A DNA stretch of 63,881 nt, filler included, from Octopus bimaculoides (GCF_001194135.2; 5 parts of 5 records of this genome joined end to end with filler, not necessarily neighbours in it); one strand, 5' to 3'. Counted from the first letter of the whole stretch, positions 1,197 to 24,840 are shown. Notes: a model not told the origin generated them from the sequence alone. A program made the numbers and translations.

Positions 1197-2080
1197 GTAT
1201 TTCATCCTCTTAGGAGCAATAAGTTGTCAAATGAGTATTAGTAATGAACAGTGGTTTAATTCAACTGACTGTGAACTGCAAACTGTAGCATTTGTTGATA
1301 ATCCTTCTACTTGCCCTGTGCATTTAAAAATGAGTGCAATTAACCAGTAAGGGTTAGTAATATGAAGTGCATTGGCTTTAGTAGACAGAAACTGATAGGA
1401 GCCCATCATGCATATATGTGCATATGCACATATATGTGTGCATATGTATGTGAGTGTTGGTGTGTGTATGTTTGCGTCTCCTTATAATTATATAATTATT
1501 GTAAATGAGTGTCACTGTCATAAAAGCAGTGTTGTTCATTTCCAGTATTCTACAAAAACATGTCTGGCCTCATGGAAATATTACTCCTCTTAGAAATAGT
1601 TAAGAGATAGCGACAGAAGGGGCATGTGGGCACAGAATTGAGTGGAATTCTTTGGGGTTTGGATAATTCACCTTTGAAAACATGGGTATTTCGCTTGACA
1701 TCCTCAAACAACCTTTATTCAAGGACCTTTTGAGCGGGATGGGCTACTTGACCTGAAGAAAATTCTAACTGGGCCCCACCTGCAAGGTCATGTGCTGTTT
1801 ATCTTGATATGAGACCACTATGTCATGCACATATGGTTGTGATGCATGTGCTTGATGTACCCTTATCAGACGGGTAGTCATGATGGGTATACTGGGCTTC
1901 GTATATTTTACCCCCGTGTCACTTTGATGGCATGCCCTGCTATCTCACTCAATAATAATAATAATTGTGTATGTTGTCATGAACACCCTCATATTATGCT
2001 TAACTATTCTGCCTTACTTTTAATTTTGTTTCAGTTTCTATATAAGCTGACACCCTAATCAAGAAGACAGTGATATCAAT

Positions 2081-2243
2081 ATGAAGAACATACTATTTAC
2101 CATAGTCTTCACGGCACTGCTTACCTTGGCTGCTGGCTTTGTCTATAAGTGTGACAATCAGGACTGTTCTAGCTGTCCTTCTGTGGAAAATTGTGAGAAA
2201 ACTCTAAAATGTGGTTGCTGTAAAATTTGTGTGAAATTCATTA
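2081..2243 (+). CDS. Gene 1 coding exon 1: signal peptide + N-terminal 8-Cys half of an IGFBP (IB) domain
   Basis: Acceptor ttttgtttcag at 2034 and ATG at 2081. Encodes MKNILFTIVFTALLTLAAG|FVYKCDNQDCSSCPSVENCEKTLKCGCCKICVKFI with a hydrophobic leader and an xCGCCxxC IGFBP-type motif. Donor A|GTAAGT after 2243 (phase 1). Confidence 0.9.
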
Positions 2244-2699
2244 GTAAGTATGAGAGTTTAAATTGCATCATCCATTTAACTTGTAAACCTGATAAATTGT
2301 GTTTATGCTTGTATTCACAAATATGTTGTGCAACGTATAGTCATCATCATTTAACGTCGGCTTTCCTTGCTGGCATGGGTTGGACAGTTTGACAGCACCA
2401 GGCTTCACTGTCAGTTTTGGCAGGGTCTGGCTTATAGTTGGCTGTACTCTAGTCAACACTGAGGTTTGATGTTTATAATATATGTACGCCAGATAACAAT
2501 TGAGTTTGTGGTTAGCTTCACTCCAGTCATGTTTAGAATTTATTCTTTTTTACTCTAGGCACAAAGCCCAAAATTTTGGGGGAGGGGGCCAGTCTATTAG
2601 ATCGACCCCAGTACGCAACTGGTGCTTTTGCCTGTCGTGCTAATATTTCTGCCAGCTCGCCACCTTACGCTTAAAGTTTGTCAAACCTCAGATAAAACT

Positions 2700-3180
2700 A
2701 CAGTTTATATTTCAGATAGAACTTGATGGTATGAGGCCCCTCGTCTGGGATGCCACATGCTGTGATACCTTCTCTAGTGGCAACTTGGTGTGTTCAGCTA
2801 CAAGTCCAGACTCTGCTGCTCATTAGGTTGAGAAAAGCAAACTGCCAAAGCATCAGTCATTCTCTGAAGGTTTATGGTTGAACCAGTAATGGTGGAGATC
2901 TCCAGTGTTCTCGGCCCCAGACCATATCCCTGCTCACCACAATTAGGGTGGAGATGGCTATCTGCAGGTTCAAACCCCATGAATCAGAGTGGCTATTCCA
3001 GCGCATCTCCCTCACCATCTTCCTGGGCAACGTCTTTTCCATTTTATTTGCTGTGACCATAAGGCAGTCTGAATTACAGGAAATCAGGTGAATGCAAGAA
3101 TTTTGTAGCTTACTACATGAACATTAAAATAATGAAGTGCTTCTGTTGCAACAAGAAAAAAAGGAAAAAGAAAAAGAAAA
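2700..3180 (+). mobile_element. 3' remnant of a CRE-like (RLE-type) non-LTR retrotransposon in a gene 1 intron
   Basis: Frameshifted translation PLVWDATCCDTFSSGNLVCSATSPDSAA..K / EPVMVEISSVLGP..LGWR / PHESEWLFQRISLTIFLGNVFSIL matches the WDxTCxDT..AA..K..ET.G..QRIS...GN endonuclease tail. A-rich end at 3155-3180. Confidence 0.75.
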
Positions 3181-3191
3181 ATTACCAAATT

Positions 3192-3580
3192 AAGCGCAGG
3201 AGTGGCTGTGTGGTAAGTAGCTTGCTTACCAACCACATGGTTCCAGGTTAAGTCTCATTGCGTGGCACCTTGGACAAGTGTCTTCTACTATAGCCTCGGG
3301 CCGACCGAAGCCTTGTGAGTGGATTTGATAGACGGAAACTGAAAGAAGCCCGTCGTATATATGTATATATATATGTGTGTTTGTGTGCCTGTGTGTCCCC
3401 CCACCATCGCTTGACAACCGATGCTGGTGTGTTTACGTCCCCATAACTTAGCAGTTTGGCAAAAAGAGACCGATAGAATAAGTCCTAGGCTTACAAAGAA
3501 TAAGTCCTGGTGTCGAATTGCTCAACTGAAGGCGGTGCTCCAGCATGGCCACTGTCAAATGACTGAAACAAGTAAAAGAG
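3192..3580 (+). mobile_element. tRNA-derived SINE family A, near full length
   Basis: GGAGTGGCTGTGTGGTAAG A-box-like head, GGTTCAG B-box region, ccttgggcaagtgtcttctact core, internal (TA/TG)n, tail ...gactgaaacaagtaaaaga. Related copies at about 4470-4815, 6408-6600, 21765-22250 and 33160-33470. Confidence 0.85.
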
Positions 3581-3898
3581 TAAGTGAGTTCAGAATCATG
3601 CTTTCATCTTCTGACCCACAACTCCACAATATATTACAGATATATTGTGAAATCTTTGAATGAGGCAGATAATTCAGTTTTTCTTTCAGTTTAGCGAGGA
3701 GTAAAACAAAAGAACCAGTGCAAGGTATACTTGTTCATTGTCTACTCTGTAATGATAGAGATAGATTTCTCATATTTCTCTGTCAGTTATTTCTCTTCAA
3801 AGAAACCAAAATTTGAACTTTGTCCTTTTTGAATCTTTTAAGTAGATGAAATGGTTCAATTTCTTGTATTAAAGTAAGCTTTTGTACATTTATTCCAG

Positions 3899-4003
3899 AG
3901 GAAGATGAAATCTGCATCTCTACAACCAAAATGCTTCTGCAAACTCATTTGGAATGTGCTACAGGACTTTTGTGTAATCCATATACCAAGAAATGTACTA
4001 AAG
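3899..4003 (+). CDS. Gene 1 coding exon 2: C-terminal 4-Cys half of IGFBP domain
   Basis: Acceptor tttattccag, donor G|GTATGT, 105 nt, phase 1-1. Reads (K)EDEICISTTKMLLQTHLECATGLLCNPYTKKCTK, matching the ExC...C..GLxC...C pattern that completes a 12-Cys IB domain. Confidence 0.88.
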
Positions 4004-4308
4004 GTATGTTTTTGGAGTGTTTATACTTTTGTTGGTTTCAATTTTTGGACAGTGTATCTTTTAGTCAGGAAGGAAGTGGCTACTTGTAGTGGCTATGCAT
4101 GCATGTGTGTAAACAAAAACTGGAAAATGTGATATATTGTAATTCCATGTTACATGTGTTTCCTTAACATCTATATACTCTGGGATCTTGAATAAAAGCA
4201 CCTCACAAATTCACATCAAGAATCTTGTTAATCAAATACAAAAGCTCTATAAGCTTTAGCCTTCCACATTATAAATTAACCAGATTTTATTTATTTATTT
4301 ATTTTCAG

Positions 4309-4381
4309 ATCACAGTTTCCTCAACCAACTGCAAGAGAAAAAGCCTTCATTTAATAATACTGTCATCTGCCACAACGACAT
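4309..4381 (+). CDS. Gene 1 coding exon 3: start of degenerate thyroglobulin type-1 domain
   Basis: Acceptor tttattttcag, donor AT|GTACGT, phase 1-2, open frame (D)HSFLNQLQEKKPSFNNTVICHND(I). Phases join both neighbouring exons. Confidence 0.8.
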
Positions 4382-5231
4382 GTACGTAACATTGAATCTA
4401 TGTACTATTCCAGTTTTGTAGAATTGTCTATTGAACATGTAGTTGTTGATTTCTTATAAGCATATAGACATAAGAGTGGCTGTGTTGTAAGATGCTCACT
4501 TCCTAACCACATGGCTCCAGGTTCAGTCCTACTGCATGGCACCTTGGGCAAGTGTTTCTATTACAACCTTGGGCTGACCAACGCCTTGCAAGTGGATTTG
4601 GCAGACGGAAACTGAAAGAAGCCTGTCATATGTGTCTGTGTGTGTGTGTGTGTTTGTTTGTTTGTTTCCCATAACCTCTTGATTAATGATGTTTGTCTGT
4701 TTATGTCTCTCATGACTTAGCAGTTTGACAAAAGAGTCTAATAGAATAAGTACTGGGTTAAAATTCCTCAAGGCCTGACACAGCAGGAGCGCAGTCTAAT
4801 GATTGAAACAAGTAAAAAAAAAAATGAAAGATAAAACACCCCTGGTTTATATGAGATGAGGCACAATGTAGTGAGATGAAAATGATAAAAACAGCATCCT
4901 GATATTAGTTCTTCACTTGGCTATTTGCATTCTAGAACACTAAATCTTTTACTTGTTCCAGTCATCGGATTGTGGTCGTGTTGTGGCACCACGTTGAAGG
5001 GTTTAGTCATACAGTTCGGCTCCAGTATTTATTTATTTTTTTATTTATTTATTTTTTTCAATCTGATACTTATTCTATTAGTCTCTGTTGCTGAACCAAT
5101 AAATTACAGGGACATAAACAAACCAACACCAGTTGTCAATTGGTTGTGGGAACAAACAGCACAAAAAGGCACCCCCAGTTGCCTACACATATATATGTAT
5201 ATGTTTGTGTGTGTGTGTGTTTGTGTGTGTA

Positions 5232-5572
5232 AGGCACACGGCTCAGTGGTTTGAACATTGGACTCACAATCATGAGATAGTGAGTTCAATTCCAAGACTG
5301 GACTGTAAGTTGTATTCTTGAGCAAGACACTATATTTCACGTTGCTCCAGTTCACTTAGCTGTAGAAATGAGTTGCAACATCACTTGTGCCAAGCTGTAT
5401 CAGCCTTTGCCCTTTCCTTTAATTACTATTAGTGGCATGGGGAGAGGAGGCTGATATGCATAGGCAACTACTGGTCTTCCATAAGCAACCTTGCCCAGAC
5501 TTGTGCCTCGGAGAGTAACTTTCTTGATGCAACCCCATGATCATTCATAATCGAAGTGGGTCTTTACCCTTT
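5232..5572 (+). mobile_element. tRNA-derived SINE family C
   Basis: Head GGCTCAGTGG...GAGTTCAATTCC (A and B boxes). Second copy at 10482-10810, partial minus copy at about 18795-18955. Confidence 0.85.
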
Positions 5573-6061
5573 ACTTTGTTATTTTCTTGTTTGTATTTGT
5601 AATTGTATAACATGTTCTCTGGTTTTCTTTTTTTTTATCTTTGTTGCCATACACATTCGCTTGCTTTCCCTCAAAAAAAATTAAAGCTCTCAGCTTAGAT
5701 TTTTGGGGGCAACCAGATTTGAACAGTCTCAAGTGTAACTGCCCGAAACTGTAAGGATAATTTCGTAACTTGACTGATGAGAGAAACTTGCAAATGATCC
5801 ATCCTTGTTTTTCCCTGTCCATCTTTTTATTATTTTTTCTGTTTGTCTTCACATCATCTATCATTATTGTTGTCTGTTTACGTTCTTACCGCCCCCACCG
5901 CCCAAAAAAAATTGCTGGCCATGTGCCAAAATCTGAAACCAATATTTCTTAAAATTATTTCGTGGCATGGAAGAAGGTGCCCATCAAAACGGACTCACTT
6001 CATTTTTTTTTTTTTGTTTGTTTATTTCTTGTTTTACTTATTTATTTATTTTTCTTTCTAG

Positions 6062-6141
6062 ATGTTACTGCAGCTTTAAGGGACAAATACTTACAGGATA
6101 TACAGCTCTGCATATCAATCATCTTACTCCCTTGTCTTGTA
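6062..6141 (+). CDS. Gene 1 coding exon 4: CYC...C half of first TY domain
   Basis: Long pyrimidine tract + ctag acceptor, donor A|GTAAGT, phase 2-1. Reads CYCSFKGQILTGYTALHINHLTPLSC with the CxC..G motif of TY domains. Confidence 0.85.
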
Positions 6142-6587
6142 GTAAGTAATCTTGCTAACCTATTCTTTCCAACACTCCACTCTTCATTGTTCTTTCCTTG
6201 TTGTCTCCAAGCTGAGATTATTTATAAGACCATTCTTCTATAGAACTGAAATGACAAGAGTAAATAAAAATCAAAACCCTTAGCCTTTCAACATGTAAAC
6301 CAGCCATATCCAGCCCAAATAACTTATCTATTTTATGCTCAAACCAACCAGATTTGGCCTCTCATATCTATCCAATAGTATCATTCTAAAAAATTAAACA
6401 TTCACATCAGGAGTGGCTGTGTGGTAAGTAGCTTGCTTACCAACCACATGGTTCCGGGTTCAGTCCCACTGTGTGGCATCTTGGGCAAGGGCAAGTGTCT
6501 TCTACTATAGCCTCGGGCCGACCAAAGCCTTGAGTGGATTTGGTAGACGGAAACTGAAAGAAGCCCGTCGTATATATGTATATATAT

Positions 6588-6624
<37 letters not shown>

Positions 6625-6796
6625 AGTCAGTAAATAGTGGGGTTGTGTTAACCGCACATGGAGAAATAATAGGAAAATGAAATAAACATTTTCATTCTCC
6701 TTCTTCTTGATAATTTGCTTTTCGCAATGAAAACTGGTTAGAGATCTTTATTAAAATATGCTTCCAGTTTAGCATTCTGCCTTTTTTTCATTTTCC

Positions 6797-6827
<31 letters not shown>

Positions 6828-7211
6828 CTGTGTTTGTCCCCCCCCCCCAACCTCTCACAGTTGCCTTACCTGCTAGAAATAGCAGCACACATGCTCTTAC
6901 ATCAGATCCCAATGCTGGCTGTTCAACAACCAAATGAAGGTCAGATTTTCAATCTCAGGATCATCCTGATTCCAAAAAAGGGTATAGTATGTCTATGTAG
7001 AGCAAACGTAGACTGAGATTCAGGGATCCTGGACAGACAGAGTTTCACTTTTATTTATATAGATGATGGAAGCGTGTCAGTGTCAAACGTGTGTTTAGGG
7101 ATCAAAGGAGGAACCTGTGTTAAGGATCAAAGTTAAAACATATGATTGCAGATCTTTTTATTTGATATTTCTAAAATTTCTTCAAAGAACAATAGCAGCT
7201 TTCCTTTACAT

Positions 7212-7500
7212 CACAGGTTCTCAACCAGGGTCTATATCAAATTTTGGGAGGTCCACGCCCCAAAACAGTAAATTGGGGATCCACAATAGTATTTTAAGGG
7301 CCCCTGAAAAAATTTTGCTTTATATGTATGTATTGCAAGAAAGGGCTAGGTTTCTTTCTTTGGCATTTTACAACAAAATAGGAATTTTGAAAGACATTTC
7401 TATAAGACTAGATTTTAAGCATTAAGTGGCTATGGGGGGTCCACTGGAGTAAAATAGTAATCAAAGGGGTTCATTGATAAAAAATAGTTGAGAAGCCCTG
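7212..7500. mobile_element. Older hAT-type MITE
   Basis: Imperfect TIR (cacaggttctcaacc / agttgagaagccctg); 8-bp TSD CTTTACAT/CTTTAGAT (7/8). Confidence 0.65.
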
Positions 7501-7771
7501 CTTTAGATTAATACACGTCTTTATATGTGAACTGGGGTCAATTCAAAAGTTGTTTCAATGAATTCTATTTACTCAATGAACTTAAATTGCTTCAGTGGAT
7601 AACATCTGCACTTAAGAATAAATTTGGTAAAATGTAACATGTCTGTTGAGGATAGGAGCAGTTCTCTTATTGGAAGCTTTAACTTGTCAGTGTAAAAGAA
7701 TTGTACTAATCTTCTAGATAGATTTCTGTTTTGTTCTCTATAATCATATATTTTATTTCTTAACTTTACAG

Positions 7772-7962
7772 ACTGTGCTAGACACAAAGTTAACTATAAG
7801 AAATCAGGGTTACTTGGGAAACTGTTTCTGTGCACCAAAAAGGGTAGCTACGAGAACATTCAGTGTAGTGGGTCAAGTTGTTATTGTGCTGATGAATCTG
7901 GAAAACAAGTAAAGGATAAAGAAGGATTTCATATAAGTGAGATCGAGAGTTACCAGTGTTAA
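7772..7962 (+). CDS. Gene 1 coding exon 5: complete thyroglobulin type-1 domain + stop
   Basis: Acceptor taactttacag, phase 1. Reads (N)CARHKVNYKKSGLLGKLFLCTKKGSYENIQCSGSSCYCADESGKQVKDKEGFHISEIESYQC*, with six Cys and the G-x-Y...QC...CYC-x-D-x-x-G TY signature. TAA at 7960-7962, donor AAG|GTTTGT after 7967. Total CDS 612 nt = 203 aa. Confidence 0.92.
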
Positions 7963-8145
7963 TTAAGGTTTGTATTGTTTGTATTTTCATCGAGTTTACC
8001 TTTGACTTGCTTCCCCACTGCATCATATATAAACACTCGTACACACATATATAAACACATACACACACTCGTACACACATATAGACACACACACACACAC
8101 ACACTCGTACACACATATATAAACACACACACACACATACATACA

Positions 8146-8380
8146 GTGGGGTGTTGAAAAGTCTCTGGCTTTGGGTAAAAGAAAATACAGGAGGATCAGT
8201 TAATTATGATTTTATTCAACATATTCCCCTCTCAGATTCACACACTTATTGCAGTGGTCCTTCAATTCTTCTAAGCCTTATAAAAGAACTCTGAAGGTTG
8301 GGCCTCCAACCAGGCCTTTTGCAATACCCTTAAAGCCAGGAACTTTGCAGCACCCCCTCGTACATGCATATATGCAAGCA
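8146..8380. mobile_element. Tc1/mariner-type MITE
   Basis: Inverted ends ggggtgttgaaaagtctctggcttt / aaagccaggaactttgcagcaccccc, in TA-repeat context. Confidence 0.7.
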
Positions 8381-9258
8381 TGCATTTGTATGTATGTGTG
8401 TGTTTGTTTCGCTTTGTCTTGACATAGTGTGATTATTGTAAACAAGTGTCACTATCAAACAAGCAATGTCGTTCATTTCCAATATCCTGCAAAAACACAT
8501 CTGGCCATGGAGAAATATTAGCTTGCCTTGAAACAGGTACTTGTTAACAAGAGTTTTTTTTACTTGTTTCAGTCATTTGACTGCAGCCATGCTGAGGCAC
8601 AGCCCTGAAGGGTTTAGTAAAATTGATTCCAGTACTTATTTTGTCTTAAAGCTGATATTCTATCAGTTTTTTTTTTGTTTTTTTTTTGCTGAACCACTAA
8701 ATTATGGGGCCATAGAGACAAATCAATAATTTGGTGGTCACCAGTTGTCAAGTAATGGTGAAAACACACACACACATGGCACAGTTTCTTTTATTCTCTG
8801 TCTACCAAATCCATTTACAAGGCTTTTAATCCTGGAGCTATAACAGAAGACATTTGCCCAAGGGCCTACACTGTGGGACTAAGCCCAGAACCACATTGGG
8901 AAGCAAACTTTTTGCCACACACACCCATACCTGCATCATCATCATCATCATTTAACGCCTGCCTTCCATGCAGGCATGGGTTGGACAGTTTGACAGGGGT
9001 CAGCCAGGTAGAAGACTATCCCAGGCTACTCTGTCTGTTTTGGCAGGGTTTTTATGGCTGGATTCCCTTCCTAACACCAACCACACCATCTAAACCCTGC
9101 ATCTAAATGCAAAAAGAAAAATCCAAATTAATATAAATACATCTATCATCGATATTTAACTGATCCTCTACTGATCAGAAGGTGAATTATGTCCATGTCT
9201 ATAAATTTCAGACTATTTTGCACTGCTTATTTATATAATAATTTTCTGCTTATTTCAG

Positions 9259-9610
9259 ATTATATTTTCCAAAAGGAAGCATTCAGATGATTCTAGTGAT
9301 TCAAACTTCATTGTCTGTAAACTGTATTCAAAATCCTTTTTATATTATTGTTATAGAGATAGTAGTTAATAGTGGAAAGATGTTATCAATAGCCAAGCAA
9401 AAATAACTTTATCACCAACACAATATGATGTTAATGTTTTTCTTGTCACGTTATTTCCACGTTATTTATAATATTTCTTATTGATGAAGGCATTTCAAAT
9501 TTTGTTACGAATCTGTTATGCATTTAAGTGTTTAAGCATATTTTTATTAACTCATGCATTTATTACTTGATGTATTTTACCCAGAAATAAAATATTTTAA
9601 AGCAAGTCAG
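9259..9610 (+). other. Gene 1 probable non-coding 3'UTR exon with polyadenylation signal
   Basis: Acceptor ttttctgcttatttcag at 9258, unique AT-rich sequence, AATAAA at 9586-9591. The 3' end is approximate. Confidence 0.55.
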
Positions 9611-11184
9611 AGAGTGGATGTAGTTTTTATCTTAGCATCATCATTTCTTTTATTTATTTTTTACTTGTTTTAGTCATTGGACTGTGCCCATGCTAGGGCA
9701 TTATCTAGAAGTGTTATTTAATCAGACAAATTGCTCTCAGTACTTATTTTTAAGTCAGGTTTTCCTATGCTATTGGTCTCTTGCTAAACTGACAATGATT
9801 TAAACAAGCTATCACCAGTTGTCAAGTGAGGGCATACACATACACATGTGTGTATGTTTGTGTGTGTGTGATTAAGGAGTTTATTTCCCAATTGTGGTCT
9901 TGGGTTCAGGACCACTGTGTGATACCTTGGGTTATAATTCCTGGCTGACGAAAGATTTGTCAGTGGACACTAGAAAATGCCCATTGTGTGTGTGTGTATG
10001 TGTGTATGCCCTTACCTAGACACCATGTGATGGTTGTAAATGAACATCCTCGTCATACAAGCAAGATTATTCATCTCAAATCTTCTGTGATAAATATGTC
10101 TGAACATGGAGAAATACTACCCTTGCAAGGAAGCAAATGTGGATTGGCAACAGGAAGAGCATCCAGCTGTAGAAAATATCCCTCAACAAGTTCTGTCTGA
10201 CACATGCTAGCATAAAAAAATAGTTGTTAAATGATGATGATCATCATATATATCAGGTAGTTTCCTATCTGGCTGGCTCCTGTCAACTATCCTACCCATG
10301 CATATATGGAAGACAGACGTTAAGTGATGATGATATATATATACGACGGGCTTCTGTCAGTTTTCACCTACCAAATTCACTCACAAGACAATTAGTTGAT
10401 CCAAAGCTATAGGAAAAGACACTTGCAAGGGTGCTGTGCAGTGGGCTTTCAATTTGTTTGTCTTATAAAGTTTACTGAGGAAAGGTGCATGGCTTAGTGA
10501 TTTGAGCTTCAGGCTCACAATCACGAGGTAGTGAGTTCAATTCCTGGACCAAGTTGTGTATTGTGTTCTTGAACAAGACCCTTTATTTCACATTGCTCCA
10601 GTTTATTCATCTGTAGAAATGAGTTGCAACGTCACTGGTGCCAAGCTGTTTCGGCCTTTACCTTTCCCTTGGATAACATCATTGGCATGGAGAGGAGAGG
10701 CTGGTATGCATGGGCAACTGCTGGTCTTTCTTAAACAACCTTGTCTGGATTTGTGCTTCAGAGGGTAACTTTCTAGGTGCAAACCCATGGTCATTCATGA
10801 CCAAAGGGGGATTTCTTCACTGAGGAATTTCTTAAAACTCTTCTCTACTCCTAACCTTGTATAACAACATTGGAAAATATGGGTATTTCTGTAAGCATGA
10901 ATGAACAAATGATTGCATTTAACCCTTTTGCACATAAACCAGATATATCCAGCCCACATTTACTTGTTTTATGTTCAAACCAACCAGATTTGACCTCTCA
11001 CATGTACCTTACATTAAAGTCACATAATCAAAATCTCAAAACCACAAGATAATACCTGATTGATTCAAATCAATATGAATAAATAAGTATTACATTTGAC
11101 AGAGGAATCTGAATGTGAACAGGTTGAACTATAAGGTGAATTTATCTAAAGTCAATATGTAAAAATAAAAACAAAGACCTTTTC

Positions 11185-11312
<128 letters not shown>

Positions 11313-11640
11313 AACATGGTATTTGCTGATATAAAAATACATCCACATTAAGTTGGATACATACATATACATACATACATACACACTCAAATATGAATAT
11401 ACATGTATATACACACATATTTATACAATATGCATATGCAAAATCCAGGGCCAATGCAGAGGAATTAAGATATTATTTCTCTAACTTGAGTGTTTATTTT
11501 GAAATCTCACATTACCTCATGTATTCTCATCCAAAATGGAGATAAATAACAACATTCTCGAATGGATCACTTGAATAATTGTGGAGATCTTTCTCCATGA
11601 AACCACTGGTTGCCTTGTTAATCCACAAATAAAGTATATA

Positions 11641-11685
<45 letters not shown>

Positions 11686-13124
11686 AATACACACACAAAC
11701 ATAGTATAGGTAGAAGCATGGTTAAACTAATGGACATTTAGCATTTCAAGCAGTGTATTTAAATCTTTTGTATAGTGGCATCTAGAAAGACATGGGTTCT
11801 GTGTAAGCTAACTTCACTTTACAAAGAGAAGGTCTTGAGTTGCTTTGCCTTAAAATGGAATGTTAACAGGATTTATAAGATATATAAATTATTACAAACA
11901 AGATATGGAGATTTTAGATGTTATCTATTACAAACAGAGAATTAAGTTTATTTCCTTGATTTATAAAATTTTGTAAATATCAGAACAGATAAAAAACAAA
12001 TTTCATGGATAGTTTTAAGCTCTATTCTTCATTACTAGCAATGCATACAAAATAATTTGAAAACATAAAATGATAGACTTATTATTTAAATGTAATCATT
12101 TGTTTACTTAAAAAATTTCAATGGAAGTATCAAAGACGAGGAGAGGAAGAATATTGTAATTCAACAGTTTCAGATGAGACTAAATTTCTATAAAGTGAAG
12201 ATTATTTTTGTAAAAATGGCCTATATTTTCTACTGGCATTGAACTGGATTAAAGAGTGTTAAAATATTTCTCAGTAAATTTTCTAAAAAGATAAACTAAA
12301 AGATAATTTTTACAGTTGAAACTAACTGAAAGGATAACATGAAAATTAAGTTTGATATGGAAATTTTTCTCACATGTCTGAAACTTAATTAATGGATAAA
12401 ATTATTATTAATAATCATTATTAATAATAATAATAAAATGAATGAAAAGCAAAGTAAAGTGTATAACAGTTTTGTAATGAAAGTTGAATGCTTTCATCAT
12501 TGAAAACTATTTTTGAAAATGTTGGAGTGTCATGACTAGGAAACCAACATTACTATTAGATCATTAGATTGTATCAGTACTCATAAAAATTGTTTTTGCT
12601 AGTCTAATTCTTGACATCTCTGACCATAGATTTCTGCATTCAGTCAGAAAGTTCCTTTCAAAAGCATTGGTCTGGACAAGTTTTTTTTCTTTGTGTGTGT
12701 GTGTGTGTTTGTATGGAAGATTAACACTTGCAGATTGATGAAGGTCTTTTTTTTTCATACATTCCACCAATGATGTCCCAAAGAAAAGCAAGATTGGTAC
12801 AGCTTTGCATCAGCCATAATGTAGGTGCTACCATTTAGAACTTAAAGAGCTGGAACAGAGAATGCAAGACATCCCATTAGAAGCTTTAACAGTTCCAAAG
12901 ACTTGAATTAAATCTTTTTTTTTTTTTTTAAGTGACTGAAATATAAAATTGGTTTAAAGTTGATCTGAGCAAGATTTGAAATCAAAGTGCAGACCATCAG
13001 AACAAATATCACTGCACGTTCTCTCCCGTGTTCTAGTAATTCTGCCAATTTGCTACTTTTGTCCAGCTATACTAACAACATCATCCCACCATTAACTATT
13101 ATTTTCATATAGTAACTTCAGAAA

Positions 13125-13450
13125 TCATTGTACAATATTCCTGTGAGACATGGACACTGACAGCAGAAATCGAAAGACGAATCCAGACTACAGAGATTTC
13201 AGGAGACTTCTAGGAATATCATACAGAGATTGTGTCACGAGTGAGGAAGTGAAAAAAAAAAAAAAAAATAAGGCAGGCAATAGGGCCCTATGCAGAGACA
13301 GAGAGAGAAAGAGGTGGCAAAGCAACACCTGTGAGTGGACAGATCTAAAGATGAGAGATGCAGTGCAAGAGGCAGAAGACAAAGACATTTGTAGGGATCT
13401 GGTTGCAAAGTCATCGGTAGTGCCCCAACGGTTAGCCAGACTACAGGATA
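13125..13450 (+). mobile_element. RTE-like LINE ORF 3' remnant
   Basis: CETWTLTAEIERRIQ...FRRLLGISYRDCVTSEEV matches the conserved post-RT YGCETW...LRRILGI motif. Confidence 0.75.
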
Positions 13451-13789
13451 TGTAGTGTAGTGTAGAGACTCCTATCTTCCATAGTTCTGGAATTAACCTA
13501 CAAATAATGAAGTTATTGAATGAAACCAACCTGAAATAAATAGAAAAATAAATAAATGGCATTATTAATTCAATATTAAGTTTAATTATTAATTAATAAA
13601 CTTATATATAAACAAAGACAGTACATAACAGCATTAGATCAGTTAAATGTACATAAATCATCTTCTACTACTACTACTACTACTATTACTACTACTACCA
13701 CCACCATCTGTCTTCTATGCTTGCATTCATTGGATAGATGGTTCAAAATGATCTGACTGGTTAGCAGACTGCATCATGTTCCAATGATT

Positions 13790-14555
13790 TGACTGAGGAC
13801 TGATGAACCGGATGGCTGCACCAGGCTCCACTCTGATCTGGCAGAGTTTCTACAGCTGGATGCCCTTCCTAACGCCAACCACTCTGAGAGTGTAGTGGGT
13901 GCTTTTATGTGCCACCGGCATGAGGGCCAGTCACACGGTACTGGCAACGGCCATGCTCAAAATGGTGTTTTTTACGTGCCACCTGTACAAGTGCAATAAG
14001 ATGACACTGGTAACGATCATGCTCAAATGGTGCTATTTACGTGCCACTAGCACGGAAGCCGGACACTGCTGTGGCAATAATCACGCTCGGACAGTGCCAG
14101 TAATCGAATATGGTTCAATTACGATTTCGATTTCACTTGCCCCAACAGGTCTTCGCAAGCAGAGTTTAGTGTTCAATGAAGGAGAGGTTGGCATGGGTGC
14201 TAGTCATCGAATTTGGTTCGATTTCAATTTCAAATTCAAATTCACTTGCCTCAACAGGTCTTCGCAAGCAGAGTTTAGTGTCCAATGAAGTAAAGATATG
14301 AATAAGTGAGCTGGCTACACTTCTGGCAGAGGCCACAGATTATGCTCTCTCTTGGCTTGACAGGTCTTCTCACGTACTGCATATCTCCAAAGGTTCCGGT
14401 CACTAGTCATTGCCTCGGCGAGGCCTAAAGTTCGAAGGTTATGCTTCACCACCTCATCTCAGGTCTTCCTGGGTCTACCTCTTCCACAGGTTCCCTCAAC
14501 CACTAGGGTGTGGCACTTTTTCACATAGCTATCCTCATCCATTCTTGCCACATGT
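13790..14555 (-). mobile_element. 5'-truncated RTE LINE (ORF end + 3'UTR)
   Basis: HVARMDEDSYVKKCHTLVVEGTCGRGRPRKT.DEVVKHNLRTLG...DRNLWRYAV, followed by the abundant 3'UTR family ending in (GAT)n. UTR/tail copies at about 2340, 8935, 15550, 20930, 21310, 22830, 24190, 25830, 33535 and 58890. Confidence 0.85.
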
Positions 14556-14571
14556 CTATCCCATATATGAG

Positions 14572-14612
<41 letters not shown>

Positions 14613-14869
14613 GTATGTGTTTATATATATATATATATATATATACATATATATATGTGTGTGTGTGTATATTACTATTTAGTAGAAGTGACAGTGATTC
14701 AAGGTCCAAAAGTTTCGTGCATTAGCATGGACTTCTTATTTCCACTAAATATTAATAAAAATATACATATACTCATATTTTAAGTTCTATTTTTCCTGTT
14801 TGCACCAACATACCAATATATATATATATATATATATATGATAATAATAATAATATAAGTAATATATAT

Positions 14870-14941
<72 letters not shown>

Positions 14942-15070
14942 GCATACATACATATACATGGATACACACATGTATAGATGCATACACACACATATATGCA
15001 CATGCATGCATACAAACACATGTATCATTAATCAACATTTTAACATCCAATTTATCCATGATTGCTCCGG

Positions 15071-15120
15071 TCAGACAATATTGCACCTTCCAGAGATATA
15101 GTCAAACAAAGTCGCAGCCA
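15071..15120 (-). CDS. Candidate terminal coding exon of gene 2 (LAATLFDYISGRCNIV*)
   Basis: Acceptor tatgctttag, phase-1 compatible, 169-nt intron. It would give about 121 aa and an even Cys count of 10. Alternative acceptors exist (13140, ~11611). Confidence 0.4.
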
Positions 15121-15366: not shown

Positions 15367-16028
15367 CTAGAAAAACATTAAACAGGAAATACAAAAAGAG
15401 AAGTGAGTCTATCTTTTTGATTGGTACCTTCTTCCAGATCATGAAATAATCTCAAGAAATATTTGATGCAGTATTGGTTTGAAATTTTGGTACAGGGCCA
15501 ACAATTTTAGGAGGAAGATGCCTAAAATCAATCAAATCAACCCCTGTGCTCATCATCATCGTTTAACATCCACTTTCCATGCTGGCATGGGTTGGACGGT
15601 TTGACATGGAGTTGACCAGACTCCAATTGCCTCTTGTGGCATGGTTTCCACTGTTGGATGCCCTTCCTAAGAGTTTCTTATTTCTTTACTGCTCACAACA
15701 CCAACGTCCTCTCAACGATTAGCCAGAGATGATTTTTAAAATGGGAATATTTGAAATAAACTTGACTGCTCTTACAAACAAGAATACTAAAAATGAACCT
15801 GACTGCTCTCAAAAATTAAGTAAAAAAAAAACATGAAAAATAACCCAGAATCCTTGTGGAATTTAAATACACAATTGAAGAGCTAATATCATGAGCTTGT
15901 TTTGATCCTATTGCATCATATCTCCTGTCAAAGAACTCTGATGGCAGGAGGGGTTGCTTATGCAAAAAATAAAATAATATGTTTAAATGACAATATCATA
16001 TAGATTCAAAGTTATATACCTATCATAC

Positions 16029-18292: not shown

Positions 18293-18455
18293 ATATAACT
18301 TTAGAACAAAATTCACAACAGTTACATTGACTTTTCTGACAACTTTCTATCATCAAACACCTAGAACAATCCACAGGTTTATGACATGTGAAGCTAAAAC
18401 CAACTACAAAAGTAATCAATGCAGTAAGGACAGCGATGATTAGCATGTTCTTCAT
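18293..18455 (-). CDS. Gene 2 coding exon 1: signal peptide + 8-Cys IGFBP-like half domain (paralogue of 2081-2243)
   Basis: Acceptor ttttaatttacag before 18494, ATG at 18455. Encodes MKNMLIIAVLTALITFVVG|FSFTCHKPVDCSRCLMIESCQKSQCNCCEFCSKVI. Same 163-nt coding length and phase-1 GTAAGT donor as gene 1; about 25/55 aa identical by hand alignment. Confidence 0.88.
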
Positions 18456-22259: not shown

Positions 22260-22722
<463 letters not shown>

Positions 22723-22771
22723 CTTTTNNNNNNNNNNNNNNNNNNNNNNNNNNNNNNNNNNNNNNNNNNNN

Positions 22772-23783: not shown

Positions 23784-24409
23784 ATCAAGGCAGCAAGCTG
23801 GCTGAATTGTTAGCAAGCAGGGCAAAATACCGAGGTGTTTTGTCCATCATCATATTCTGAGTTCACATTCTGCCAAGGTTGACTTTGCCTTTCATCCTTT
23901 CACGGTTGATGAAATAAAAACTAGTTAAGTACTGTAGTCAATGTAACTGACTAGTCCTCTACCCAACAAATTTCAGGCCCTGTGCCTATAGCAGAAAAAA
24001 TTAGTATCATTATTATTATTAAGCCCTCAGCCAGCTGGACACTGATAAGTGGAATGTCCACTTTAGCTTTCTATAGAGGATTAGTGGAGAGAAAGTGCAA
24101 TGACATTCTTGGGGAGACTTTTGGCATTGAAGAAAGTCAGCTAGCTGCTTTTTTCCAGAGAACTTTCAGCTCAGGACCAATGGATTGTCATTCGTCGTTT
24201 AAGTCCGCTTTCCATGCTAGCATTTGTTGGAAGATTTGACTGAGGATTGGCGAACCAGATGGCTGCACCAGGCTCCAATCTGATCTGGCAGAGTTTCTAC
24301 AGCTGGATGCCCTTCCAAACGCCAACCACTCTGAGAGTGTAGTGGGTGCTTTTATGTGCCACCGGCACGAGGGCCAGTCAGGCGGTACTGGCAACAGCCA
24401 CGCTCAAAA

Positions 24410-24840
24410 TGGCATTGTTGACTTGTGGGTTTACGATGTACACTTGCTGTTGCATGTGAGATGGATCTGGCTTTCAACTGAATCCATTGTGAAGACTGCC
24501 TCATTGCATTCCATTAACTGGGAAGAGCAGGCTGTGTTTATATGTCTGATGGCCATGATAAAAGAGATTATGTGGTGGATGAGACTAAAGGGGCTGAAGA
24601 CAAACATTTTTTTTCTTTGGCCAATCCCTGATCAACTTCTTCGAGTTTCACTTGAAGAGGAGAATAAGGGTAGAAAGGGAAGTGTTGCCTTCTATCCAGT
24701 TTGCTGAAAGGTGGGTGAAAGGTTTGAGTGAACAGGCCAGTACTGACCATATACTTGTAATTAGAGAAAAGGAAAGGGAAAAAGGCATCTGCCCCAAAAG
24801 TCAGGGCACCCATGGTTTTTATGAGATTTTTCCATGAGTA
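24410..24840 (+). mobile_element. Tx1/L1-clade LINE ORF2 C-terminal remnant
   Basis: KEIMWWMRLKGLKT / FFGQSLINFFEFHLKRRIRVEREVL..FAERWV; similar to 62290-62620. Confidence 0.6.

Follow-up and report, generated by a model that had tools for sequence, protein, structure and literature searches.

The window analysed here, 63,881 nucleotides of DNA from Octopus bimaculoides (GCF_001194135.2; five parts of five records joined end to end with filler), is part of chromosome record CM046617.1 and carries on its plus strand the gene LOC106877888. The original prediction, made from the sequence alone, had described at this position a spliced gene for a secreted protein in which an N-domain of the kind found in binding proteins for insulin-like growth factors (IGFBPs), or IB domain, is followed by one and a half thyroglobulin type-1 (TY) units, and this reading holds overall. 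LOC106877888 is an expressed gene with at least 7 exons, and its predicted protein is 100% identical to the NCBI entry "uncharacterized protein LOC106877888" (Octopus bimaculoides). The product, which would be secreted, is 203 amino acids long with a mass of about 20.7 kDa, and what is newly shown here is that it has undergone accelerated evolution on a fixed cysteine scaffold behind a conserved signal peptide.

The 5 coding exons have exact AG/GT borders, with start phases 0, 1, 1, 2, and 1, and give a single 203-amino-acid frame with 22 cysteines, 12 of them within residues 24 to 87, 4 within residues 110 to 140, and 6 within residues 142 to 203, which would probably pair into 11 disulfides. 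All 4 coding junctions, for which a check against RNA had been proposed, are matched exactly by the spliced RNA contig L003 (1013 nt, Logan assembly of SRR32601320), which holds the uninterrupted 612-nt open reading frame (ORF). The first coding exon (2035 to 2243; L003 177 to 385, 100% identity) lies between an AG at 2033-2034 and a GT at 2244, and in the RNA the ATG exon indeed begins at the predicted start, 2035. It contains 5' untranslated region (UTR) from 2035 to 2080, the ATG at 2081, a putative signal peptide (residues 1 to 19, 2081 to 2137), and the first subdomain of the N-domain from C24 to CGCCKIC50, and it ends in phase 1. The signal peptide call holds by inspection, with MKN followed by a hydrophobic core and AAG/F. 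Exon 2 (3899 to 4003; L003 386 to 490, 100%) encodes the second IB/AmFPI-like subdomain with C60, C74, C80, C87, and the motif CATGLLC. Exon 3 (4309 to 4381) encodes a linker, a short helix, an N-glycosylation sequon at N105, and Cys110, the equivalent of the "QC" cysteine in a truncated first TY unit (TY1). The second half of TY1 (C115-Y-C117-S ... C140) is encoded by exon 4 (6062 to 6141), which ends within the C140-N-C142 junction codon, and exon 5 (7772 to 7967, coding to 7962) encodes the full second unit, TY2 (C142 ... C161 ... QC172 ... C177-Y-C179-A ... C203).

The stop codon TAA (7960 to 7962) is followed by 5 nt of 3' UTR and a GT donor at 7968, which opens an intron in the 3' UTR seen in the RNA contig (7968 to 9258). 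By the usual rule of about 50 nt, this intron, starting 5 nt past the stop, lies too near it to set off nonsense-mediated decay. The last exon (9259 to 9610) consists of 3' UTR only; its predicted end at 9610 is plausible, with an AATAAA at about 9585, and RNA support from the contig (L003 831 to 1013, matching 9250 to 9432) extends only to 9432. At the other end of the gene, L003 shows an upstream non-coding exon 3.1 kb beyond the window (L002 4616 to 4791), whose donor is gtaagt and which has a TATAAA some 45 nt upstream.

Domains of the predicted protein

The 12 cysteines of the N-domain, C24 to C87, include the motif K-C-G-C-C-K-I-C at residues 43 to 50, which is of the GCGCCxxC type, and a second motif, C-A-T-G-L-L-C; in 30 N-domains of the family, each of these 12 positions is invariant or nearly so. 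The proposal that this domain is IB-like stands at the level of superfamily and fold but not at the level of Pfam models, the octopus protein having no IGFBP match (PF00219) at E ≤ 10. Among full-length relatives, amfpi-1 was matched in 6 of 11 (14.6 to 23.2 bits, cut-off 25) and IGFBP in 1 of 11 (E = 0.042, 14.9 bits, cut-off 28), while isolated N-domains of relatives reached amfpi-1 in 21 of 30 cases at E ≤ 1 (best 8.9e-7) and IGFBP in 19 of 30 (best 9.2e-6). A profile of the 30 N-domains run against PDB sequences matched AmFPI-1 (3BT4) at E = 3.2e-6 with almost the whole domain covered, and at E ≤ 10 it reached no chain of IGFBP, SIBD-1, or HTRA1. A word-indexed search with the N-domain profile returned just 2 proteins, including a sawfly PF12190 protein (E = 3.7e-9), and a phmmer query of the PDB with the N-domain of a spider member of the family produced nothing but spurious matches.

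Structure prediction points to the same group of folds. The AlphaFold models have moderate confidence (pLDDT 75.7 at full length and 75.5 for the N-domain alone), and the top Foldseek matches of the N-domain model have E-values of only 0.03 to 0.18, which is to be expected of a knot of disulfides of 70 residues. These matches are the IGFBP-4 N-domain (2DSQ_B/A and 1WQJ_B, probability 0.84 to 0.96, TM 0.40 to 0.50), AmFPI-1 (3BT4, probability 0.91, TM 0.42 to 0.48), and spider SIBD-1 (3ZXB, probability 0.80, TM 0.48 to 0.51). Matches of the full-length model to 2DSQ_G/H were set aside as IB evidence, these chains being the IGFBP-1 C-domain, a TY domain. The HMM, profile, and fold results therefore place the N-domain in the IGFBP-N/SIBD/AmFPI-1 superfamily, and judged by sequence profile its nearest solved relative is AmFPI-1, a protease inhibitor of silkmoths.

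The resemblance to IGFBPs raises the alternative that the protein is their protostome counterpart, in which the IB-like domain and the TY module would clamp an insulin-like peptide and control its availability. Its 12 cysteines with KCGCCKIC and CATGLLC come in IGFBP-like order, the predicted N-domain fold is nearest to the IGFBP-4 N-domain (2DSQ_B, probability 0.96, TM 0.40 to 0.47), an IB domain followed by a TY unit is the layout of IGFBP1-6 (one relative, P0087, is exactly IB plus one TY), and the UniRef label of the O. vulgaris orthologue is "IGFBP N-terminal domain-containing protein". Perlustrin, a single-IB protein of abalone, is reported to bind IGFs (insulin-like growth factors) as well as insulin, and the family N-domains that reach the Pfam IGFBP model count on the same side. 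Against this alternative stand the missing IGFBP match of the octopus protein itself and the family profile that reaches AmFPI-1 and no IGFBP chain. The Cys11-Cys12 loop would also speak against it: Leu70 and Leu74 of IGFBP-5 sit in a long loop of this kind, whereas by inspection the octopus loop has just 6 residues (NPYTKK), so that no counterpart of either leucine is evident. Val49, Leu70, and Leu74 are key IGF contacts in the hydrophobic binding cleft of IGFBP-5 (PMC3356058). Taken with the rate of change described below, we consider a role as an insulin-like-peptide carrier improbable. The idea that the octopus optic-gland "IGFBP" (Wang & Ragsdale) is this gene was rejected; that protein is ImpL2, which is unrelated.

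TY2 had been called as a complete thyroglobulin type-1 domain, and it is the sole significant Pfam match of the protein (PF00086, corresponding to the thyropins of MEROPS I31; residues 161 to 191, 28.6 bits against a cut-off of 20.6). It fits the six-cysteine type-1A pattern (C140/142, C161, QC172, C177-Y-C179-A, C203). TY1 has only 4 cysteines (C110, C115, C117, C140/142), the first loop and its 2 cysteines being absent, and in the alignment its C110-x4-C115-Y-C117 ... C140 corresponds to the latter half (QC ... CxCV ... C) of the first TY unit of full-length relatives, in which that unit is complete. A phmmer search with the octopus protein against PDB sequences matched TY repeats of thyroglobulin and saxiphilin, and a profile of the family's TY-TY module reached thyroglobulin (E = 8e-35), saxiphilin (5e-14), the p41 invariant-chain thyropin (2e-5), the IGFBP-3 C-domain (1.6e-4), and a fragment of tick Ir-thyropin (8R6T, 0.04). 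At the TY-TY junction, S-C140-N-C142-A-R, a single residue separates the last cysteine of TY1 from the first of TY2, and a C-x-C-A motif occurs in 131 of 171 retrieved proteins. The same junction is found in Ir-thyropin as a central Cys-Lys-Cys, whose two cysteines form disulfides that cross between the domains; cathepsins L, V, and K are inhibited by each of the two domains (PMC10889554).

Family distribution and the shortened thyroglobulin unit

The architecture had been thought non-standard. It is not: an N-domain with CGCCxxC followed by 1 to 5 TY units is widespread in invertebrates. An exhaustive HMMER search returned 220 cluster representatives at E ≤ 1e-3, 7 of them at E ≤ 1e-30, and about 40 of the retrieved representatives or members have this arrangement. 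Full-length relatives occur in Argonauta hians (203 amino acids, 48% identity, aligning with its O. bimaculoides counterpart over the full length of both), Octopus vulgaris, Sepia pharaonis, the mussel Sinanodonta, and several transcripts, and include the "U86-liphistoxins" of the Liphistius spider venom gland; in their alignment the cysteine columns are invariant or nearly so. Other carriers bear names of their own, among them proteins of Haliotis, Pomacea, the nemertean Lineus ("equistatin-like"), and Caerostris spiders ("nidogen-2"). The family is thus widespread among protostomes and annotated under placeholder names only, and literature searches for LOC106877888 and for "liphistoxin" found no characterisation. 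Because the gene is already annotated, if as uncharacterised, and its architecture is common in invertebrates, the architectural novelty falls away.

What remains specific to the lineage is the truncated TY1, the only such part of the architecture. The Sepia locus has the same 5 coding exons with boundaries at homologous positions, and its exon 3 encodes 44 amino acids with both first-loop cysteines (C...PRC...QC) where that of Octopus encodes 25. Since exon 3 is full-length in Sepia and short in Octopus, the half TY arose by shortening within the exon and not through a missed or lost exon. A hidden exon carrying the missing half of TY1 was sought and rejected: applied to every six-frame piece of the window, the family HMM found only the 5 known exons and a lone minus-strand copy of exon 1. 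By alignment to p41-type domains, the lost segment would be the stretch from the helix to the second cysteine, which forms the first binding loop (L1) of thyropins. TY1 is shortened in Octopus, Argonauta, and one further relative (P0006), and a similar loss is found in Liphistius.

Several public gene models of the family are faulty at the 3' end. The annotated O. vulgaris protein (P0002, 196 amino acids) leaves exon 5 early and reads the 3' UTR exon as coding, although the genome (OX597830.1) contains an intact TY2 exon at L001 22364 to 22555; the repaired orthologue has 203 amino acids. In Sepia pharaonis the 236-amino-acid model is mis-spliced at its 3' end and has skipped an intact TY2 exon (L004 34807 to 35025). 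A second O. vulgaris paralogue lies about 100 kb from the orthologue on the opposite strand in convergent orientation (L005, OX597830.1). It is annotated as a 139-amino-acid "IGFBP N-terminal domain-containing protein", a model that is probably truncated because the locus holds a TY2-type exon at 24260 to 24496.

The lone copy of the ATG exon in the window (18293 to 18455, minus strand) encodes the peptide MKNMLIIAVLTALITFVVGFSFTCHKPVDCSRCLMIESCQKSQCNCCEFCSKVI, with 45% amino acid identity, a signal peptide, and the first 8 cysteines. It is preceded by an AG acceptor, and its GT donor falls in the same phase. Searches of its strand with tblastn and the HMM found no family exons 2 to 5, a database search with the peptide gave no match, and it is absent from every annotated protein. 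The copy is either what is left of a duplication or a piece of an unannotated, highly diverged paralogue. An NCBI model of 120 amino acids on the minus strand, which lies from 12842 upward in the window and ends there in "...FKSLELLKLLMGCLAFSVPAL*", shows no resemblance to the IB/TY family and seems to be a weak prediction.

The window also holds repeats. A SINE-like element ("ggagtggctgtgtggtaagtagcttgcttaccaacc...") occurs in 2 copies about 91% identical, at 3197 to 3380 in intron 1 and at 6408 to 6597 in intron 4, and neither contains a tRNA gene according to ARAGORN. Another repeat, "catcatcatcatttaacg...ggcatgggttggacagtttgac", lies at about 2340 to 2440, 8940 to 9080, and 15560 to 15650. 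A 101-amino-acid ORF at 13150 to 13455 on the plus strand contains "LLGISYRDCVTSEEV"; we take it to resemble the tail of a LINE-type retrotransposon ORF2 and to be probably a transposon fragment. Long microsatellite tracts of the TA/CA type, at 11000 to 12000, 14500 to 15100, and 22370 to 22727, bring the GC content down to 0.24 and give rise, on either strand, to spurious ORFs with many Tyr, Ile, and Cys residues.

Accelerated evolution and candidate functions

Rates of change were estimated by the Nei-Gojobori method between O. bimaculoides and the repaired O. vulgaris orthologue. For the whole protein the ratio of non-synonymous to synonymous rates (dN/dS) is 1.84 (dN = 0.184, dS = 0.100), an estimate from one species pair, with few synonymous differences and a simple estimator. 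By region it is 0.33 in the signal peptide, 2.4 in the N-domain, 5.7 in the linker and half TY, and 1.5 in TY2. Over residues 21 to 141 the ratio is about 3.6 (one-sided Fisher test of non-synonymous versus synonymous differences, p = 0.016), and the same test over the whole mature protein gives p = 0.021. Changes affect 64 of the 161 non-cysteine residues of the mature protein and none of the 22 cysteines (P = 1.4e-5 if change were uniform), both species retain the N105 sequon, and the isoelectric point (pI) of the mature protein goes from 8.3 to 6.1. UTR exons and most intron flanks are 91 to 96% identical, and coding exon 4 is 82.5% identical as against 92 to 93% in its flanking introns. 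Exon 5 (7772 to 7967 versus L001 22364 to 22561) is 77% identical with flanks of 72% and 64%, and together with the adjacent intron flanks it is far more diverged than the other exons, introns, and UTRs (89 to 96%).

A ratio of this kind is unexpected for a carrier of a conserved ligand, with 40% of the non-cysteine residues replaced between congeners, which adds to the case against an insulin-like-peptide binder. It could also be read as relaxed constraint, that is, as drift towards pseudogenisation after duplication in which a high dN/dS reflects loss of function. A ratio near or above 1, the loss of a TY1 subdomain, the relic paralogous exon nearby, and the small number of public transcripts would all agree with such decay. 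It is made very unlikely by the intact ORF, splice sites, and 22 cysteines in both O. bimaculoides and O. vulgaris, the cysteine retention being improbable by chance at the P value given above, and by a dN that lies above, and does not merely equal, both dS and intron divergence. The conserved N105 sequon, the retained 203-amino-acid orthologue in Argonauta, the nearly invariant cysteine columns of the family, and the transcription and correct splicing of the gene point the same way. The Octopus gene rather evolves in a toxin- or immune-like pattern, in which the signal peptide and cysteine scaffold are fixed while dN/dS exceeds 1.

The best reading of the locus, to which we give about even weight, is that LOC106877888 encodes a compound inhibitor or binder of proteases that is secreted and diversifies rapidly. 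The protein would act extracellularly as a tight-binding, non-catalytic partner of proteases, with the intact TY2 inserted as a wedge in the cleft that holds the active site of papain-like cysteine proteases, in the manner of p41, equistatin, saxiphilin, and Ir-thyropin. The AmFPI-1-like N-domain may add a second specificity, for serine or metallo-proteases, or a docking role, and the targets, which might be pathogen, prey, or reproductive proteases, would co-evolve with the protein, as the rapid turnover of residues on a fixed cysteine scaffold suggests. An inhibitor is favoured because TY2 is a complete thyropin unit in a subfamily that includes a proven tick cathepsin inhibitor, and because the closest characterised relatives of the N-domain are protease inhibitors. 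AmFPI-1/CP8 proteins are 12-cysteine inhibitors from insect haemolymph that act on fungal serine proteases, trypsin, and thermolysin, and members of the group are also opsonins or antimicrobials (PMC9273619, PMC3278429). Among the roles first put forward, a thyropin or a gland protein would thus fit better than an insulin-like-peptide binder.

Several observations weigh against inhibition. Without the L1 region TY1 leaves at most one canonical thyropin site, and many TY domains are non-inhibitory, including those of thyroglobulin, nidogen, and most IGFBP C-domains. The octopus protein has no match to the Pfam amfpi-1 model (PF12190) at E ≤ 10, and the AmFPI-1 homologue CP8 of Manduca had no inhibitory effect on the proteases against which it was tried (PMC9273619, PMC3278429). 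The narrow basis of the dN/dS estimate belongs here as well, as does exon 5, whose divergence may stem from gene conversion from a paralogue or from local rearrangement and not from selection. Public RNA yielded a single contig with the full ORF, L003, and a literature search found no paper characterising the IB-like plus TY family biochemically or otherwise.

The same pattern of change is compatible with a secreted effector or structural protein whose task is neither protease inhibition nor hormone binding. It might serve in saliva or venom as a ligand for receptors of the prey, act against microbes or as an opsonin, or take part in recognition in the egg coat or in reproduction. A hypervariable surface over a fixed signal peptide and cysteine framework is seen classically in toxins and reproductive proteins, and the shift in pI between the 2 Octopus species is in keeping with it; relatives are named from spider venom glands, and the Galleria homologue of CP8/AmFPI-1 is bactericidal and an opsonin. 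TY-TY proteins are present in spider venom and octopus salivary proteomes. The TY protein of the O. vulgaris posterior salivary gland was considered as the orthologue and rejected, being a different and longer protein (228-amino-acid alignment, A0A0L8GGY2), and the O. vulgaris salivary proteome supplements contained no peptide of the orthologue. With the salivary protein a different one, and with the best-characterised homologous modules being inhibitors, we regard such a non-inhibitory role as somewhat unlikely.

For the compound inhibitor or binder, as for the family at large, the tempting label needs correction: the protein looks like an IGFBP, yet its sequence groups with a widespread and unstudied protostome family in which an IB/AmFPI-1-type domain is joined to tandem thyropin units, and whose members, under names that say little, turn up in the venom glands of spiders and the genomes of molluscs. 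The interest that remains lies in this family assignment, in the octopod-specific truncation of TY1, and in the signal of accelerated evolution. The gene is a reasonable candidate among cephalopod salivary, immune, or reproductive protease inhibitors, and offers a cheap test case for whether lophotrochozoan IB-type domains bind insulin-like peptides or proteases. A more far-reaching scenario, which we consider unlikely, would make the protostome IB-like plus TY family the true sister of the vertebrate IGFBPs. In that case the IB plus TY layout would go back to the ancestor of the bilaterians and have served ancestrally in protease inhibition and not in hormone carriage, and one octopod copy would have been recruited by positive selection as a salivary or venom, immune, or reproductive effector, with its first TY unit remodelled.

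Comparison with known systems

Four known systems resemble the octopus protein in part. Vertebrate IGFBP1-6 share with it a signal peptide, a 12-cysteine N-domain with (G)CGCCxxC, a linker, and a C-terminal TY unit. They differ in having one TY unit where the octopus protein has 1.5, and CWCV in place of CYCS/CYCA, and the octopus protein is set apart further by the lack of a Pfam IGFBP match, a short Cys11-Cys12 loop, fast evolution, and an N-domain split by an intron after CGCCxxC. AmFPI-1/CP8 (PF12190), a group of protease inhibitors from lepidopteran haemolymph, is similar in its 12-cysteine domain of about 70 to 90 amino acids with C-x-C-C-x-x-C, in the profile match to 3BT4, and in predicted fold; it is a single-domain insect protein, and the octopus sequence alone falls below detection by its Pfam model.

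The short two-domain thyropins, Ir-thyropin and the spider protein U24-ctenitoxin-Pn1a/TT1LP, are likewise secreted TY-TY proteins with a Cys-x-Cys junction. They share the consensus C-x-C-A-R-D...G-L-I-G-K-x-F-x-C...Q-C-x-G-S-x-C-Y-C, and the octopus TY2 has the six cysteines of type 1A. The octopus protein adds a 12-cysteine N-domain, and its TY1 is without the first disulfide loop; the C-domain of Ir-thyropin has a modified disulfide pattern where the octopus TY2 looks canonical, and the similarity between them is weak (8R6T, E = 0.04). The actual family of the octopus protein is that of the protostome proteins with an IB-like domain and varying numbers of TY units, filed as uncharacterized, equistatin-like, nidogen-2, or U86-liphistoxin. 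Most of its members have a complete six-cysteine TY1 and 2 to 5 TY units, in comparison with which the octopod TY1 is shortened.

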